Source: Felis catus (Eukaryota). Taken from it: a stretch of DNA of 64,000 nucleotides. The stretch lies in the NCBI RefSeq assembly GCF_018350175.1, contig NC_058369.1, positions 124,001 through 188,000 on the forward strand. Direction: 5' to 3'. The notes beneath the pieces are model-generated. The model made no database searches and was not told the DNA's origin. It saw only the letters and a program-made list of their open reading frames with translations. A program made the position numbers and the translations under genes. Of this stretch, positions 345 to 63,467 are shown in pieces (within the stretch, counting starts at the first letter, position 1; each line of letters begins with the position of its first letter).

Positions 345-985
345 AGTGATTGGGGAGTGAATGAGTAGATGAATGGATCCATGAATATATAGATAAAGGG
401 ATTAAGAGCTGACTTGTGGGTGGGTAGATGAATGGATGATTCCGTGGATGATAAATGGGTTGATGGATTGTGAACGGAAAGATCATGGGGGATGGATCAG
501 TAGATGGATGGATGGAAGGATGGACAGATGGGTGGATGGATGGTTGGATGGAAGGAAGGGTGGGTGGCTAGTGGGTGGGTGGGTGGATGGATGGGCGGAT
601 GGATGGAAGGATGGTTGGATGGATGCATGGACAGACGGACAGATGGATGGAAGGAAGGGNNNNNNNNNNNNNNNNNNNNNNNNNNNNNNNNNNNNNNNNN
701 NNNNNNNNNNNNNNNNNNNNNNNNNNNNNNNNNNNNNNNNNNNNNNNNNNNNNNNNNNNNNNNNNNNNNNNNNNNNNNNNNNNNNNNNNNNNNNNNNNNN
801 NNNNNNNNNNNNNNNNNNNNNNNNNNNNNNNNNNNNNNNNNNNNNNNNNNNNNNNNNNNNNNNNNNNNNNNNNNNNNNNNNNNGATCAACAGATGGACTG
901 GATGATGAGCAGTGGGTTCATGGATAGGTTGGTGAGTAGATAGATGAGTGAATGGATGGATAGATGAACTGATTGATCAGTGAGT
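345..985 (+). repeat. (GGAT/TGGA)n-type simple repeat with an internal gap
   Basis: Repeated tggatggatgg/gatga units flanking Ns at 660-883. Confidence 0.9.
660..883. other. Assembly gap
   Basis: Run of N. Confidence 1.
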
Positions 986-3656: not shown

Positions 3657-4740
3657 GGCCCAGACAGAGATACACTGTCACGTGGGGAAACTGAGGCCCA
3701 GACACGGAGATACAGTGTCACGTGGTGAAACTGAGGCCCAGACACAGAGATACACTGTCACGTAGGGGAAACTGAGGCCCAGACACGGGGATACACTCTC
3801 ACGTAGGGGAAACTGAGGCCAGACACGGAGATACACTGTCACGTGGGGAAACTGAGGCCCAGACACGGAGATACAGTGTCACGTGGTGAAACTGAGGCCC
3901 AGACATAGAGATACACTGTCACATTGGGGAAACTGAGGCCCAGACACAGAGATACACTGTCACGTAGGGGAAACTGAGGCCCCAGACACGGGGATACACT
4001 CTCACGTAGGGGAAACTGAGGCCCAGACACGGAGATACACTGTCACGTTGAGGAAACTGAGGCCCAGACATGGAGATACACTGTCACGTGGGGAAACTGA
4101 GGCCCAGACACGGAGATACACTGTCACGTAGGGGAAACTGAGGTCCAGACACGGAGATACACTGTCACATTGGGGAAACTGAGGCCCAGACAGAGATACA
4201 CTGTCACATTGGGGAAACTGAGGCCCAGACAGATACACTGTCACATTGGGAAACTGAGGCTCAGACACAGCGATACACTGTCATGCTGGGGAAACTGAGG
4301 CCCAGACAGAGATACACTGTCACGTGGGGAAACTGAGGCCCAGACACAGAGATACACTGTCACATAGGGGAAACTGAGGTCCAGACACGGAGATACACTG
4401 TCACATTGGGGAAACTGAGGCCCAGACAGAGATACACTGTCACATTGGGGAAACTGAGGCCCAGACAGAGATACACTGTCACATTGGGGAAACTGAGGCT
4501 CAGACACAGAGATACACTATCATGTTGGGGAAACTGAGGCCCAGANNNNNNNNNNNNNNNNNNNNNNNNNNNNNNNNNNNNNNNNNNNNNNNNNNNNNNN
4601 NNNNNNNNNNNNNNNNNNNNNNNNNNNNNNNNNNNNNNNNNNNNNNNNNNNNNNNNNNNNNNNNNNNNNNNNNNNNNNNNNNNNNNNNNNNNNNNNNNNN
4701 NNNNNNNNNNNNNNNNNCACGTGGGGAAACCGAGGCCCCG
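3657..4740 (+). repeat. About 40-bp minisatellite (VNTR) in CIMAP1D intron 1
   Basis: About 22 visible units of cccagacacggagatacactgtcacgtggggaaactgagg, variants of 38-42 bp, interrupted by the N-gap. Confidence 0.97.
4546..4717. other. Assembly gap inside the minisatellite
   Basis: Run of N. Confidence 1.
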
Positions 4741-25480: not shown

Positions 25481-25814
25481 CGGCAGTGGAGAAGCGGCGG
25501 CCGGCCGTGGCTCCGGCGGCCAGTTTCCCCGACAGCGGCCGGCCGGCGGTGTCCCGGGCAGCGGCAGCGACCGAGAGTGAGGAGGACTTCCTGCGGCAGG
25601 TCGGCGTGACGGAGATNNNNNNNNNNNNNNNNNNNNNNNNNNNNNNNNNNNNNNNNNNNNNNNNNNNNNNNNNNNNNNNNNNNNNNNNNNNNNNNNNNNN
25701 NNNNNNNNNNNNNNNNNNNNNNNNNNNNNNNNNNNNNNNNNNNNNNNNNNNNNNNNNNNNNNNNCGCCTGGGCCGCGCGCTGTGGCACCTTCGCCTGGCT
25801 CACCACTCCCAGAG
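25477..25814 (+). CDS. TPGS1: TPGS1 exon 1 (148 nt hidden in the N-gap)
   Basis: [13 protein letters not shown]...[14 protein letters not shown][gap][17 protein letters not shown], donor AG|GTGCGG; frame preserved across the gap. Confidence 0.93.
25617..25764. other. Assembly gap inside TPGS1 exon 1
   Basis: Run of 148 N. Confidence 1.
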
Positions 25815-54899: not shown

Positions 54900-55700
54900 C
54901 TGAGGAAACAGAGGCGGGGCCCAGCCCAGCCCTCGCAGGCCCCGCCCCCGTTTCCTAGCAACGAAACCACGCCCCTAGCCCGTGAGGCGTGGCCGCCAGC
55001 GTCACGTGGCACCGCCGCAGCGCCCGCTCGGGCCGACGCGTGCGTATGTGCGTCCGCGCGCATGCGCAGGGGGCGGCTGGCGTGCCGTGCGCGCCCCCGC
55101 CCCGCCCCGCCCCGCGACGTTGCCCTGCGCGCGCGCGCCCGGCCCCTCCCCGTTCTTATAGTGCCGCGGGCGGCGGTTGGTGGCGGGGACGGCACGGACG
55201 GGGGCGACATGGCGGTGCGGCAGCTCGTGGTCCTGGCGCTGGCGCTGCTGAGCGCCGAGGGCGGCTCGGGAGCAGGTGAGGGTCCTGCCCGGCGCGGGTG
55301 GAGGCTCAGCCGCGGCAGCGGGGGCCCGCCAGGCGGCCCTGCAGGTGGAGTCCCTAAACCCCGGCGGCCGGGGAACGCGAGGGGTCCGAGGGCTGGCCTG
55401 ACCCCTGGGTGACGGGACCTGGGGTGGGGTCTGGAGGCGGAGCCCCGCCCTTCCGCCGTCCCCGCGTCCGGCGGCGGAGGCCCGGGCCGGAGTCCAGGAG
55501 CGGCCCCCTCTCAACCGGCGGGGTCCGCGCCCGCGGCGTGCCAGTGCCACCGCGGGGTGCATTGGCGCGGCCCCGGGATCCCGCGAGCCCTGGCGAAGCC
55601 TGTGCGGCCTGGAGCGGTGGCCGCCTCCACAGGCCCTCACGTGGACGCTGGAACCAAGGACTGAGGAATGCCCGCCCCTGAAGCCGGTGGGCTGTCTGGC
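54900..55700 (+). promoter_or_regulatory. BSG: BSG CpG island/promoter
   Basis: X-box GTTTCCTAGCAAC 54950-54962, E-box TCACGTGG near 55001, NRF1-like GCGCATGCGCA 55058-55068, GC boxes, TTATA near 55156. Confidence 0.85.
55209..55275 (+). CDS. BSG: BSG (basigin/CD147) exon 1, signal peptide
   Basis: MAVRQLVVLALALLSAEGGSGA-G, donor G|GTGAGG; 67 nt. Confidence 0.93.
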
Positions 55701-57954
55701 ACAGGAAGGGATTGTCATTCTTCCCAGGATTTAGGTCCCATGTCTGGCTCTGGGTAGGCACCTGCCCCCTGGTGTTTGCCCAAACGCTGAAACCTCCGGC
55801 AGGAAGCCAGCACGCTCTGCTTCCTTTGGTTTTGTCTGATTCCAGGCCACAGAATGAGGTGGCAGCTGGTCCACCCTCCTCTAACAGGAGTGGAAACTGA
55901 GGCCCAGGGCGGGAGGGGACGTGTTCCAAGGTCACCGTGAGGTCGCTTTGGCAGCCCAGTTCTGGGCAGGATGTGTTGAGAGGGTGTTTTTAACGGAGTC
56001 ACGAACAGCACTTATTTCTGGGAGGTCTGCACCGTGTAGAGAACGCTCAGGGGAAAATGGATCAAAGCGTATTTTTCAGGGGAAAGCGGGACAGCCTCTC
56101 TTTTGCCTGATAGAAATTTTCTTCCTTGATCGAGACTTCCCGTTTTGTTCTGGGTTAAAGATTTATAGTGATGGGCATGTAGGGAACAAAGTGCAGAGAA
56201 GGGTCTGGGGAGGCAGGAGTGCAGGGTCACGGTGTCTGCTGGGGGTGGGGGGCAGGAGGAGCTGCCTCTTGTGGGAGCTTCACCCACTTACTCCTGACCC
56301 ACTTCAGGAGCTCAATTGGCCTCTTTCCTCTTCCTTATGATCAGAACGGCCGTTCATTGAACGCCTCTGGGCAAGGCCTTGGCGCCTGGCGTGCACATGG
56401 CTCACTGCCCGCCAGCGGGTCCCTGGCCGCTGGAGCCCTTCAGGAATAGCTCTCCCTGGCGGGAGGTGGCCACGGACGGCCCCGGGGACGGCGGCGGGGG
56501 GGCGGGGGTAAGGAAGTCTCTGCGTTTGCTCCTCCCGTCAGGGGGATGCCCTGGGTTAGCGCCTTTTCACCTGTTTCCTGGGACCAGGCACCGAAGCTGT
56601 AGCTGGAAGCCCTGCGTCTCGCGTAGGGTGTGTGTGCTGGGGAGTCTAGGTGTGTCTGTGCCGTGTCTGAATCCACCTGGGACCTTTTTACTTTGTCACC
56701 TTTCCCGGGGACCCTCACAAATACCATGCGTCCCTTTTCTGCTGGGACGTGTGAATTAGTGACCGTGTTCACCTCCCGTGGCTGGGTCAGCTAGCTCCCC
56801 AGAAACTTGTTTCAGGAGCTCTGCCAGGGGGACCCCTGCTCTCCCTGGGACTGTCCAGGGCCCCGCTGTCCTGGTGCACCAGGTTGGGAGGGCACACATG
56901 GGCACCAGGTTGCTAGCTGGGTCCTGCGGGCTGGTGATTTGGCCCGAGCCTCAGGTGAAGGGAGCAGGAGCGGCCTCCTGGCCAGATGGAGGGGAGGGGA
57001 GGGTGGAGAGGCCCAGAACCCACCCCTGGCATCCCAGAAATGTTCTCTTGCTCCTCCTACCTGAGTAGAGCTGCTGAGTTGGGTGGGGAGGAGGGTGGGT
57101 GCCGGGAGCCTCAGTCTCATCCCCAGCTCGTGGGCTGTTTCCCATAAGGCCTGCCTGGCCCTGTGCCCTGCCCAGCAGCCTGAGGTCAGGGAGGAGGGGT
57201 GGCTGTTTTTAGATGAAGGTGACTTTACTTGAGAACGTGGGTCACAGTCACATGGCCAAAATGGGGGGGGGGGTCAAATGTTCTCCCTTGTTCCTCCTTC
57301 CTGTCCCTGTGGCCCTTAGGGTCCCTGTGAATTCCGCGGGTGCCCTCCCCCCTCAATCTGCTGGGCCAGGTGGGGCGTGTCTCAGTTCCCTGCTGTGTGC
57401 TACCCTCAGGTCAGGGCAGGGGTGTCAGCCTGTGGTTCCTCGGACGAGGGAGGAGGGAGGCAGGGTGGGGGAAGCTGTGCCCCGGCCCTCACTGCTCCCG
57501 CTGGTGGAAGTGGCCCTCAGGCCTGTGGCCTTTGGGCGACTTCTTTCTCTCCCAGGGAGGCAGGGCGCGGCTGGGTAAGATCGGACTGACCTTTCTAGCA
57601 GCCTCTGGGTGAGGGGACAAGGGCACAGACGCGAGGCTAGGAGGAGAGCATTCTCTGGCTTCACTTCCTGCCCTGACTCACCCTCCCGGCTCTGCACCGG
57701 CTGTTGGGTTTTGCAATCTTGGGAAATCTTGACTCCTGAGAAATGTGGGTTGCCGGGAGGTGATCCTTCTGAAGAGACAGCACAGCCACAGAGGGCTCAG
57801 GGCAGCCACAGAGCCCCAGCTTCACCCTTCTGCCGGCTTGGGATTGTGCCTGTTTTGAGTCCTGTGAATGGGCTTTGGGCCACCCCAGGGGCAGGCATGA
57901 AGGTCCACCTTGCCCCAGAGCAGTAGCCCGCGCCCTCCGATACGGACTTGAAGC

Positions 57955-58175
57955 CGTAAGTGTGTGCACGCACGTGTCCCTATGTGTGCTTTGGGTGTGT
58001 GTCTGCACACACGTGTATACGTCTGTACTCACGTGTCGTGTGTATGTGTCTGAACCCATGTGTCCACGCGTGCATACACGTGCTGTGTGTGTGTGCACGC
58101 CCGTGACCACCCCCGTGTGTGTGCACGCGTGCGTGTGTGTGTGGTGCTGTGTGCGTGTGCTGCATGTGCGTGCAC
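57955..58175 (+). repeat. Alternating purine-pyrimidine (TG/CA/CG) tract in BSG intron 1
   Basis: gtgtgtgcacgcacgtgt... cryptic dinucleotide repeat of about 220 bp. Confidence 0.85.
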
Positions 58176-58664
58176 GCGCCAAGGGTGGGTAGTGCCTAGG
58201 GCAGCGGAGAGGAGCCTCCCTGTAGCTCCTGTCTGGCTGCTGCTGAGCTGTCTGCCTCTTCCCCTGCCCGTCTAGAGTCCTGAGACCTTGTGTCCTGCCC
58301 TCCGCTGGCCTCAGGTCCTGCCTCTTCCACACAAAGAGGCCACCGCTCCCCAGACTGGAAGTGCCTGCCTGTGGCCAGTCTGTAGCAGGGCAGGGGAGGG
58401 GAGGGTTCAGTGATCTCTCTCCAGTAAAGCTTGCCTGCTGCCCTTTGGGTCAGGTTAAATTTTCTTAATGACCGACCCGGTCTCTGGACGGGAGAGCCTG
58501 CTTCTTGTCGCTGCTTCCTTCGCACTGTGGCTTTTTGAACACAGTCTCCCATTCCGATTTTTCACCCGGTTTTGTGCTGCAGGCGTCTCCCTGCAGACTG
58601 GATGGAAAAGAAGCTTATTGCCAATAGCCCCGGGATGGATCTCTGTGCCCAGATCATCTGGGCG

Positions 58665-58945
58665 TGGTCTTCTAGAAGGGACGCCTCTGGGGCATATGTC
58701 ACCGGGGAGGCGGGGAGGCGAGCTGGGGACAATGTGGAATTCCAGGATGATGGCACCAGAGCGTCCCTGTGACACCTGCCCTGAGCCCCGGGATGGGGCT
58801 CTGGCGTGCACAAGGATGGGTCTGCCGCTTCACCGATGCCCAGTGTCTGGTGTGGAGGGAAGTGGGGGGGGTCCTCCTGGTTCGTTCTCATAGCTTCATG
58901 CCCCTCACCTTCGACCCTGGGTCCCCTTGAGCGCCTGACGGTCTC
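58665..58945 (+). pseudogene. Possible degenerate remnant of the retina-specific BSG Ig0 exon
   Basis: Position in intron 1 fits; RPCDTCPEPRDGAL resembles recalled human GPNDTCSQLWDGAR; GAATTCCAG (EFQ vs EIQ) upstream in another frame; similarity is weak and judged by eye. Confidence 0.35.
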
Positions 58946-59034
58946 TCTCCCTGAACTCTGGTCCCTGGAGGGCAGCCCTCCCTGGCTCAAGCCTCCTTGC
59001 CTCAGCAGGCTTCTTACCGTCTGGTTCTAAGTGA

Positions 59035-60433
59035 TTTTTTTTTTTAATGTTTTTAGTATTTATTTTTAAGACAGAGCGTGAGTGGGGGAGGGGCAGAGAG
59101 AGGAAGACACAATCAGAAGCGGGCTCCAGGCTCTGAGCTGTCAGCACAGAGCCTGACGCGGGGCTGGAACTCCAGGACTGTGAGATCATGAGCTGAGCTG
59201 AAGTCAGACGCCTAACCGACTGAGCCACCCAGGCGCCCCTGGTTCTAAGTGATTTTTGATTCCTAAAGAGAACATCTCAAGCCAGTGGTGAGGTTTGCCT
59301 AGTTGGAAATTGAACAGAAGGGCCAGGCCCTGGGAGTCCACCAGCAGTGCCTTGGTTGTGCCTACAGAGAGGCTTAGTGGCGAGTGGGGGTGCGCTCTTG
59401 ACCTTCCGGAAGAAGGTGCCGTTCAGGACGGGGCAGCTGGAGCCAGCAGGCCCTGCCCCGGTGGGAGGTGCCCACCTCGGATGGCCCTGCCTTGATGGGA
59501 GGAGGGTTGGGGGGTTCTGCAGGGGCCTCCAGGGAATGGCGGCTGGGACTGTGCTAGATTCACTTGTTTATTTATTTGTTTATTTATTTTTGAGAGAGTA
59601 TGTGAGCAGGGGAGGGGCAGAGGGAGAAGAACTTTTTTTTTTTTTTATGTTTATTTTGAGAGAGAGAAAATCCCAAGCAGGCTCTGCTCTGTCAGCACAG
59701 AGCCCGACATGGGGCTCGAACTCCTCTGAGCTGTGCAAGTATGACCTCAGGCAAAATCAGAAGTCAGATGCTTACCTGACTGAATCACCCAGGTACCCCC
59801 AGTAGATTTATCTTTTTTTTTTTCTTTTAATTTTTTTTTCTTAATGTTTACTTATTCTGAGAGTGAGAGCATGAGCAGGGGAGGGGCAGAAAGAGGGAAA
59901 GAGAGAATCCCAAGTAGGCTCTGTGTTGTCAGCGCAGACTCCTGTGTGGTGTTTCATTTCCCCAACTGTGAGACCTGAGCTGAAATCAAAAGTCAGAGGC
60001 TTAACTGACTGAGCCACCCAGGCGCCCTTAGACTTATCTTTTTTTTTTTTTAACATTTTTTTTTTTTTAACATTTACTCATTATTGAGAGACAGACACAG
60101 GATGTGAGCAGGGCAGGGCAGGGGTAGAGAGAGAGGGAGACACAGAATCTGAAGCAAGTTCCAGGCTCCAGGCTGTCAGCACAGAGCCCGACGCGGGGCT
60201 CGAACTCCTGAACCATGAGATCATGACCTGAGTCGAAGTCAGTCGCCCAACCGATGGAGCCACCCAGGTACCCCAGATTTATCTTTTAAAAGAGGAATTT
60301 CGGAGGTGCCTGGGGGTGCTGAGTCAGTTAAGAGTCCGACTCTTGGTTTCAGCTCAGGTCATGATCTCGCGGTGTGTGAGTTCAAGCCCCGCATCAGGCT
60401 CCATGCTGACAGTGTGGAGCCTGCTTGGGATAT

Positions 60434-60475
<42 letters not shown>

Positions 60476-60735
60476 CCTCCCCCACTCACTCTCTCTCTCT
60501 CTCATAAATAAATAAAACTTAAAAAAAATTAGAAAATAAAAAAAAGAGTCCAACTTCAGCTCAGGTCATGATCTCACAGCTCGTGAGTTCGAGCCCCGCG
60601 TCGGGCTCTGCGCTGACAGCTCGGAGCCTGGATCCTGCTTCTCATTCTGTGTCTCCCTCTCTCTCTGCCCCTCCCCCACTCACAGTCTGTCTGTCTTTCT
60701 CAAAAATAAATAAACATTAAAAAAAAAACTTTTTT
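59035..60735. mobile_element. Cluster of about 7 CanSINEs in BSG intron 1
   Basis: Minus copies 59040-59238 (TSD ctggttctaagtgattttt), about 59570-59800 (nested), 59810-60028, 60040-60274; plus copies 60302-60545 and 60548-60735. Confidence 0.9.
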
Positions 60736-61130
60736 AACACAAAAGGAATTTCAGGTCTGTGCTGGGCTGGACCCAGCAGTCCATGTCTTGGCCAGGTTCT
60801 GGGGCCCTTATTGGCTTTTGTTTCCAACACCTGAGGCCCAGCTGGTTAGAATGTTTCCCGACAGAACCTTCATCGAGCCCTCTTCTCTGCAGCAGTAGCT
60901 CTGCAGACCCCAGGCTCCTTTAACTCCACAGAAGGTGTCCTTCCAGAAGGAGCCAGGTGTGATTCAGGACTCCTCTCCTCTGGGCCGGCTCAGGACAGTG
61001 TGGATGGCCTGGGGTGTCCGGGCCATTGCACGCTTGCCACAGGGACAAGTGGGCAGGTGGTTCAGGGTCCTGGGTTTGGGTCCTTTCTTTCCCTGACCTT
61101 TTGCCAATGTTCTCTCCTGTGGCCACCTAG

Positions 61131-61287
61131 GGAGCGGGATCTGGACATCTGTAGATGATGCTGGCTCCAAAACACGCCTTACCTGTGCCTTGAACCACAG
61201 CACCACTGAGATCATCGGCCACCGCTGGGTGAAGGCGGGCAAGGTGCTGAAGGAAGACGCGCTGCCCGACCTGAAGACAGAGTATGA
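61131..61287 (+). CDS. BSG: BSG Ig1 exon A
   Basis: SGIWTSVDDAGSKTRLTCALNHSTTEIIGHRWVKAGKVLKEDALPDLKTEY-E; 157 nt. Confidence 0.95.
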
Positions 61288-62005: not shown

Positions 62006-62088
62006 GGTGGACCTGGATGACCGCTCTGGTGAGTACTGGTGCGTCTTCCTCCCAGAGCAAGCAGGCAAGACCAGCATCGAGGTGAAGG
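62006..62088 (+). CDS. BSG: BSG Ig1 exon B
   Basis: VDLDDRSGEYWCVFLPEQAGKTSIEVK-G; 83 nt. Confidence 0.95.
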
Positions 62089-62209: not shown

Positions 62210-62346
62210 GGCTCCCCAACATCAAGGCCGTGAAGAAGTCCGAGCATGCCACCGAGAGGGAGTCGGTCGTGCTAGGCTGCAAGTCTGACTCCTTCCCCCC
62301 GGTCAGCGACTGGGTGTGGTACAAGATGGAAAGCTCTGGTGACCAG
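62210..62346 (+). CDS. BSG: BSG Ig2 exon A
   Basis: LPNIKAVKKSEHATERESVVLGCKSDSFPPVSDWVWYKMESSGDQ; 137 nt. Confidence 0.95.
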
Positions 62347-62422: not shown

Positions 62423-62699
62423 GTCATCAGCAACAGCTCCCAGAACAAATTCTTCGTGGTGTCCTCGGAGACGAAGACGGAACTGCACATCTTGAGCCTG
62501 GACCTGGAGACGGACCCCGGCAGGTACGCCTGCAACGGCACCAACTCGGAGGGCACCAGCCAGGCCGTTGTCACGCTGCGCGTGCGAAACCGCTTTGCCG
62601 CCCTCTGGCCGTTCCTGGGCATCGTGGCCGAGGTGCTGGTGCTGGTCACTGTGATCTTCATCTATGAGAAGCGACGGAAGCCGGACGAGGTCCTGGACG
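62423..62699 (+). CDS. BSG: BSG Ig2 exon B plus transmembrane helix
   Basis: VISNSSQNKFFVVSSE...YACNGTN...LRVRNRFAALWPFLGIVAEVLVLVTVIFIYEKRRKPDEVLD; conserved intramembrane Glu; 277 nt. Confidence 0.97.
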
Positions 62700-63221: not shown

Positions 63222-63246
63222 ATGAGGACACCGGCTCCGCTCCTCT
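63222..63246 (+). CDS. BSG: BSG 25-nt cytoplasmic micro-exon
   Basis: tgcacag|ATGAGGACACCGGCTCCGCTCCTCT|GTAAGT = DEDTGSAP-L. Confidence 0.92.
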
Positions 63247-63406
63247 GTAAGTCGTGGCCTTGCTGGGCTAGCAGGCAGGCAGTGTTCCCCGGGCAGGGCC
63301 TGGAGGGGCTGCTGGCCTGGATAGCCTGCACCCTGCACGTGGTGGGTGGGAGCAGGGACACCGTTGTGTCTTCCCGAGCGTCCGTCAGCCCTCTGTCCCT
63401 CCCCAG

Positions 63407-63467
63407 GAAGAGCAGCGGGCACATCAACGACAAAGGCAAGAACGTTCGCCAGAGGAACGCCAACTGA
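63407..63467 (+). CDS. BSG: BSG last coding exon
   Basis: KSSGHINDKGKNVRQRNAN*, donor 1 nt after the stop; spliced CDS 807 nt = 268 aa. Confidence 0.95.

Follow-up and report, generated by a model that had tools for sequence, protein, structure and literature searches.

Whether the cat can make basigin-1, the form of basigin with three immunoglobulin (Ig) domains, is the question raised by a 64-kb stretch of Felis catus DNA (NCBI RefSeq assembly GCF_018350175.1, contig NC_058369.1, positions 124,001 to 188,000; hereafter the window), which carries the BSG gene on its plus strand, at its end. The three-Ig isoform is photoreceptor-specific, acts with GLUT1 in cones, and is the reported receptor for RdCVF (NXNL1); through it, RdCVF is described as raising cone glucose uptake, and RdCVF gene therapy is in development. 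The domain that sets this isoform apart, Ig0, would be encoded between BSG exon 1 and the first Ig1 exon. We find no Ig0 coding sequence there, and we propose that the exon was deleted long before cats arose. The features on which this argument turns, in positions of the window, are as follows.

55209–55275, plus strand: coding part of BSG exon 1 (start codon and signal peptide); the ATG is at 55209, the exon ends in phase 1 at a GT donor, and its translation is the N-terminus of the Felis catus basigins P0271 and P0380
55276–61130, plus strand: BSG intron 1, 5855 nt long and free of N, in which Ig0 profile, tblastn, and frameshift-tolerant searches find no Ig0-coding sequence
58633–58956, plus strand: candidate Ig0 remnant named in a preliminary description of this DNA; the 42-nt core at 58762–58803 is the only local match, and the whole is statistically chance-like
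61131–61287, plus strand: first Ig1 exon (first half of Ig1), joined straight to exon 1 in the common two-Ig isoform, as read from the sequences of P0271 and P0380

Ig0 coding sequence in the cat window

The preliminary description had reported a gap-free intron 1 of 5.85 kb without an intact Ig0 exon, and both observations hold. Exon 1 ends at 55275, Ig1 starts at 61131, and the sequence between them is uninterrupted; the three N runs of the window (660–883, 4546–4717, and 25617–25764) lie far upstream of the intron. Our searches relied on an Ig0 profile of 121 vertebrate Ig0 domains, all taken from database searches. A comparison of the BSG exon at 62423–62698 with a representative protein library supplied caecilian and fish three-Ig basigins, and a second search with the caecilian Ig0 region yielded 120 further three-Ig basigins from amphibians, reptiles, birds, fishes, marsupials, and platypus; human basigin proteins in the match lists were left out of the profiles. 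Applied to the six frames of all 64 kb, the profile recognised nothing (best E 4.2), and gave no match at 58.6–58.9 kb. This blank result is not a problem of sensitivity, because the same profile gives 167–194 bits on the Ig0 of 20 placental proteins and 191 bits on that of the manatee. No open reading frame (ORF) or frame resembling Ig0 was found in intron 1 or in the 55 kb upstream of it, and no Ig0-encoding exon of about 348 nt was found between exon 1 and the Ig1 exon by profile, tblastn, or frameshift-tolerant searches.

Protein records agree with the genomic result. The Felis catus basigin isoforms on record measure 268, 291, 317, and 349 aa, none with Ig0, and an Ig0 basigin of about 385 aa is absent from the records of the cat and its close relatives, which cover at least 13 felid species. 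Because the window holds no Ig0 coding sequence and no felid database basigin carries the domain, our data support the view that the three-Ig basigin-1 cannot be made from the cat locus.

Ig0 across placental mammals

The preliminary description had further suggested that this lineage may lack the three-Ig isoform. Absence in the cat and in felids stands, but the lineage concerned is not the felids: it extends to all Laurasiatheria sampled, and the pig case is already published. We queried protein databases with P0271 and examined the best 120 matches, among which the three-Ig placental basigins all belong to Euarchontoglires or Afrotheria. Placentals bearing Ig0 include squirrels, guinea pig, deer mouse, gerbil, vole, lemurs, monkeys, apes, colugo, a lagomorph (as a transcript), aardvark, elephant, and elephant shrew; outside placentals, the domain is borne by marsupials, platypus, birds, reptiles, amphibians, and fishes. 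The laurasiatherian basigins among the same 120 matches are 267–352 aa long, apart from one 449-aa bat model, and none has Ig0.

As a short lead protein may conceal longer members of its cluster, we scanned all members of 20 laurasiatherian clusters with the profile. None of the 159 members carries Ig0, every score being 15 bits or less. Carnivores are represented in these clusters by at least 13 felid species, meerkat, canids, mustelids, bears, panda, seals, sea lions, and walrus, and other orders by whales, ruminants, pigs, peccary, camelids, equids, rhinos, four bat families, moles, desman, and pangolins. Clusters of hyenas and two more of bats contributed members new to the scan, which score 7.4 bits or less. 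The sirenians provide an annotation control: a cluster headed by a 269-aa protein includes manatee isoform X1, whose 385 aa contain an Ig0 scoring 191 bits. The NCBI pipeline thus does return the long form when the exon is there.

Several long laurasiatherian proteins were considered as Ig0 forms and rejected. Those of Puma (396 aa), panda (347), sea lion (365), gray whale (379), and donkey (360), like a camelid-like protein of 394 aa and a bat transcript of 358 aa, owe their length to prediction artefacts at the N- or C-terminus, and none of them contains Ig0.

Judged from the proteins on record, the absence of Ig0 is not specific to the cat, and the pattern spans all sampled Laurasiatheria. 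As the domain is missing from every laurasiatherian basigin on record, its loss probably occurred early in Laurasiatheria and would predate the felids, a reading drawn from protein databases rather than from aligned DNA.

Two side observations concern the distribution and divergence of the domain. Only short basigins are on record for armadillo, tamandua, sloth, two tenrecs, and golden mole (P0367, P0333, P0356, P0375, P0589, P0413, and P0347), and these short-only records from Xenarthra and Afrosoricida hint at either further independent losses or annotation gaps. Ig0 shows striking conservation outside placentals, marsupial and bird Ig0 being 84% identical, and placental Ig0 is noticeably more diverged (P0154, P0175, P0168, P0152, and others); because placental Ig0 is more diverged than that of birds and reptiles, our first Ig0-based protein search listed only non-placentals.

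Candidate remnant and fate of the exon

A degenerate stretch at about 58665–58945 had been singled out in the preliminary description as the only resemblance to Ig0 in the intron. The letters it cited are there (GAATTCCAG at 58737–58745 and RPCDTCPEPRDGAL at 58762–58803, the 42-nt core), and stops occur in other frames of the stretch; the call of a remnant fares worse, as the candidate lies within noise in phmmer, Pfam, tblastn, and frameshift-tolerant alignments. A phmmer search of PDB with the candidate ORFs gave no basigin match, and Pfam gave none on the same ORFs. When 19 placental Ig0 domains (human left out) were compared with the window by tblastn, only noise was returned, with no signal at 58665–58945. 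One hit of a candidate ORF, that of the 141-aa ORF at 58468–58890 (plus strand) to the locust protease inhibitor SGPI-1 (2xtt_A, E 0.013) over CxTC...ACTRMG, was rejected as a chance match of cysteine pattern.

We wrote a frameshift-tolerant profile-to-DNA alignment for the purpose, with random 360-nt pieces of the window as the null. Under the protein profile the candidate scores 32.9, which 14–17% of such pieces equal; the best score in intron 1 is 38.1, ending at 56159, and other 5.9-kb blocks of the window reach 34–54. Only with lenient penalties are profile columns 2–116 collinear over 58633–58956 (324 nt, against 348 nt for the exon); the candidate then ranks in the top 4–9% of pieces, a rank that is not significant when the number of pieces in the intron is taken into account. 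We also used a nucleotide profile, in which Ig0 was back-translated with BSG's own codon usage and combined with a decay model. The best plus-strand match in the intron is then the candidate core (23.9 bits, ending at 58801; top 4.5% of pieces). The minus strand of intron 1 reaches 27.3 bits, more than the candidate, and with looser gaps the candidate is average, 32–47% of pieces being as good. The stretch at 58633–58956 is not distinguishable from chance.

Simulation gives a measure of what these searches would have detected. Ig0 exons were simulated with 15–55% of sites substituted, together with insertions and deletions. At 15–35% substitution, scores were 76–289 with the protein profile, and medians were 77–200 bits with the nucleotide profile; every simulated exon up to 35% lay above the noise ceiling of the nucleotide profile, as did 73% of those at 45%. 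The best scores in intron 1, 38 with the protein profile and 23.9 bits with the nucleotide profile, do not rise above the noise level that other blocks of the window show. On the carnivore lineage, neutral change since the placental ancestor is expected to lie well below 35%. An entire exon that had decayed in place would still be plain, which argues that most or all of the Ig0 exon was physically deleted, and deletion rather than decay in place is its most likely fate.

Decay in place, with 58633–58956 as a frame-broken, shortened remnant, is in our estimation unlikely. In its favor, the whole profile is collinear over a length near that of the exon under lenient penalties, a pyrimidine-rich CAG lies just upstream of the candidate (about 58641–58652), and the 23.9 bits of the core exceed 150 of 150 permuted profiles. 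Phmmer, Pfam, the six-frame profile, and tblastn nevertheless give nothing at the candidate, normal penalties and looser nucleotide gaps leave it among ordinary pieces of the window, the opposite strand of the same intron outscores it, and, by our simulations, an entire exon should reach a score several times larger at every plausible level of neutral divergence.

It is highly improbable that an intact Ig0 exon exists and was lost to assembly collapse, deletion, or placement outside the window, given that intron 1 has no gap and that independent samples carry 58300–59020 as assembled, 18 sequencing runs from 8 studies each containing at least 0.93 of the words of this segment. Annotations from the separate assemblies of at least 13 felid species all lack Ig0 as well, as does every other laurasiatherian sampled, including the published pig. 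A retina-specific exon that has diverged past recognition as Ig0, yet still yields a longer photoreceptor isoform, might be sought among the alternative 5′ exons that intron 1 does carry (55276–55344 and 55668–55686) or among its several ORFs of more than 100 aa, and we regard this as exceedingly improbable. Few parts of basigin are as conserved as Ig0, as the identity between marsupials and birds attests, and because of this conservation a functional Ig0 would not drift out of reach. None of the protein models or transcript-derived proteins in the felid clusters has an extra internal domain, and the intron ORFs tested in Pfam gave no match.

Several points weigh against an ancient deletion shared across Laurasiatheria. 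The clade-wide claim rests on gene predictions, which are able to miss exons, and the dugong basigin on record has only 269 aa against the 385 of the manatee. The expected neutral divergence set against the simulations is a general figure and not a value from this GC-rich locus. None of the 18 runs that contain 58300–59020 is recorded as RNA; six raw RNA runs were listed besides them. The permutation result for the candidate core also counts here, and there is a small but real chance that a short true Ig0 fragment survives in the candidate stretch.

We propose that cat exon 1, encoding the signal peptide, would splice straight to the Ig1 exon with no Ig0 exon between them, and that the locus would yield no products besides two-Ig basigin-2 and minor variants that differ at the 5′ end. 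Basigin-1, the reported RdCVF receptor, could thus not be made by cat photoreceptors. The Ig0 exon would have been removed by deletion well before felids arose, probably early in Laurasiatheria, and RdCVF signalling in laurasiatherians, if any, would proceed via something other than Ig0, as has been argued for the pig. Taken as a whole, we consider this explanation probable. A more specific version, plausible and held tentatively, is that one deletion of the Ig0 exon in the stem of Laurasiatheria left carnivores, ungulates, whales, bats, pangolins, and eulipotyphlans without the canonical RdCVF receptor, and that another receptor is used.

If cats, dogs, and pigs all lack Ig0, large-animal results would be uninformative on the Ig0 route, and any benefit seen there would point to another receptor. 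Were the deletion in stem Laurasiatheria true, dog, cat, and pig models of retinal therapy would use another RdCVF receptor. BSG isoform 1 would also be no candidate to seek in feline retinal disease. The Bsg1-specific knockout mouse reportedly has almost normal vision. Because of this mouse, and because the pig case is published, the cat case is a generalisation rather than a surprise: it is a modest extension of the known pig case, and useful as such, but not a feline novelty.

BSG gene layout and known basigin systems

Other features of the gene and of its first intron are listed below.

55276–55344, plus strand: sequence added to exon 1 when an alternative donor (GT at 55345) is used, found by reading P0271 against the window
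55668–55686, plus strand: alternative first coding exon in intron 1, encoding MPAPEA and then a G split over the junction, with the donor GT at 55687 (P0431, P0434)
59030–60726, no single strand: cluster of six copies resembling short interspersed elements (SINE-like), four of them opposite in orientation to the other two, about 29% of intron 1
about 62006–62088, 62210–62346, 63222–63248, and 63407–63467, plus strand: later BSG exons
62423–62699, plus strand: BSG exon with the end of Ig2 and the transmembrane helix

The exon 1 extension is 69 nt long and places 23 residues, rich in Gly, Pro, and Arg, behind the signal peptide. The protein that results is the 291-aa isoform X1, and the added segment is not Ig-like. 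Jaguarundi and fishing cat are annotated with the same extended form. In Geoffroy's cat and jaguarundi the alternative first exon belongs to the annotated isoform X3 (252 aa), a product that would be without a signal peptide. The exon at 62423–62698 is 100% identical to "basigin isoform X1 [Felis catus]" (P0271) and has an I-set match in Pfam that lies under the curated cut-off.

The intron also has a marked repeat content. The SINE-like copies, which we take to be carnivore SINEs, are packed in 1.7 kb directly downstream of the candidate remnant, and a (TC)n run lies within their cluster, (TC)35 at 60434–60503; such insertions could have accompanied the loss of the Ig0 exon. A long imperfect GT/GC-rich tract of low complexity (GTGTGC and CACGTG runs) occupies 57950–58180 and yields several His/Thr/Cys-rich ORFs on both strands.

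The closest published parallel is the pig, whose BSG gene has no Ig0-encoding sequence and which therefore has no BSG1 (Ait-Ali et al., bioRxiv 10.1101/2022.01.06.475223). According to a passage of the same preprint that cites a 2021 ARVO abstract (Noel et al.), RdCVF nevertheless protects pig cones. This weakens the special importance for the cat retina that the preliminary description had attached to the loss. According to two papers, Ig0 is highly conserved and is the portion required for RdCVF binding. We found no paper that mentions Ig0 loss in cat, in dog, or across the clade. Pig BSG resembles that of the cat as a laurasiatherian gene without Ig0 sequence, and the pig, peccary, and warthog proteins have no Ig0 in our cluster scan. 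The pig preprint differs in that it deals with the pig only, by protein alignment, and mentions neither the cat, other carnivores, nor the clade pattern, whereas in the cat the genomic intron itself was tested, with an estimate of power.

Basigin-1 of human, mouse, and other vertebrates (Ig0 structures 3QR2 and 3QQN) comes from the same gene, with the same flanking exon 1 and Ig1 exon as in the cat, and the cat differs by having no Ig0 exon. What the cat window encodes is basigin-2, the two-Ig chaperone of MCT lactate transporters, with its architecture in full: a signal-peptide exon leading directly to Ig1, then Ig2, a Glu-bearing transmembrane helix, and a short cytoplasmic tail. The Glu sits in LGIVAEVLVL; the conserved transmembrane Glu has been called essential for lactate transporter binding (10.1101/2022.01.06.475223). 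We found nothing unusual in this protein, and its differences from known basigin-2 are limited to the 5′ variants, an alternative donor and an alternative first exon.

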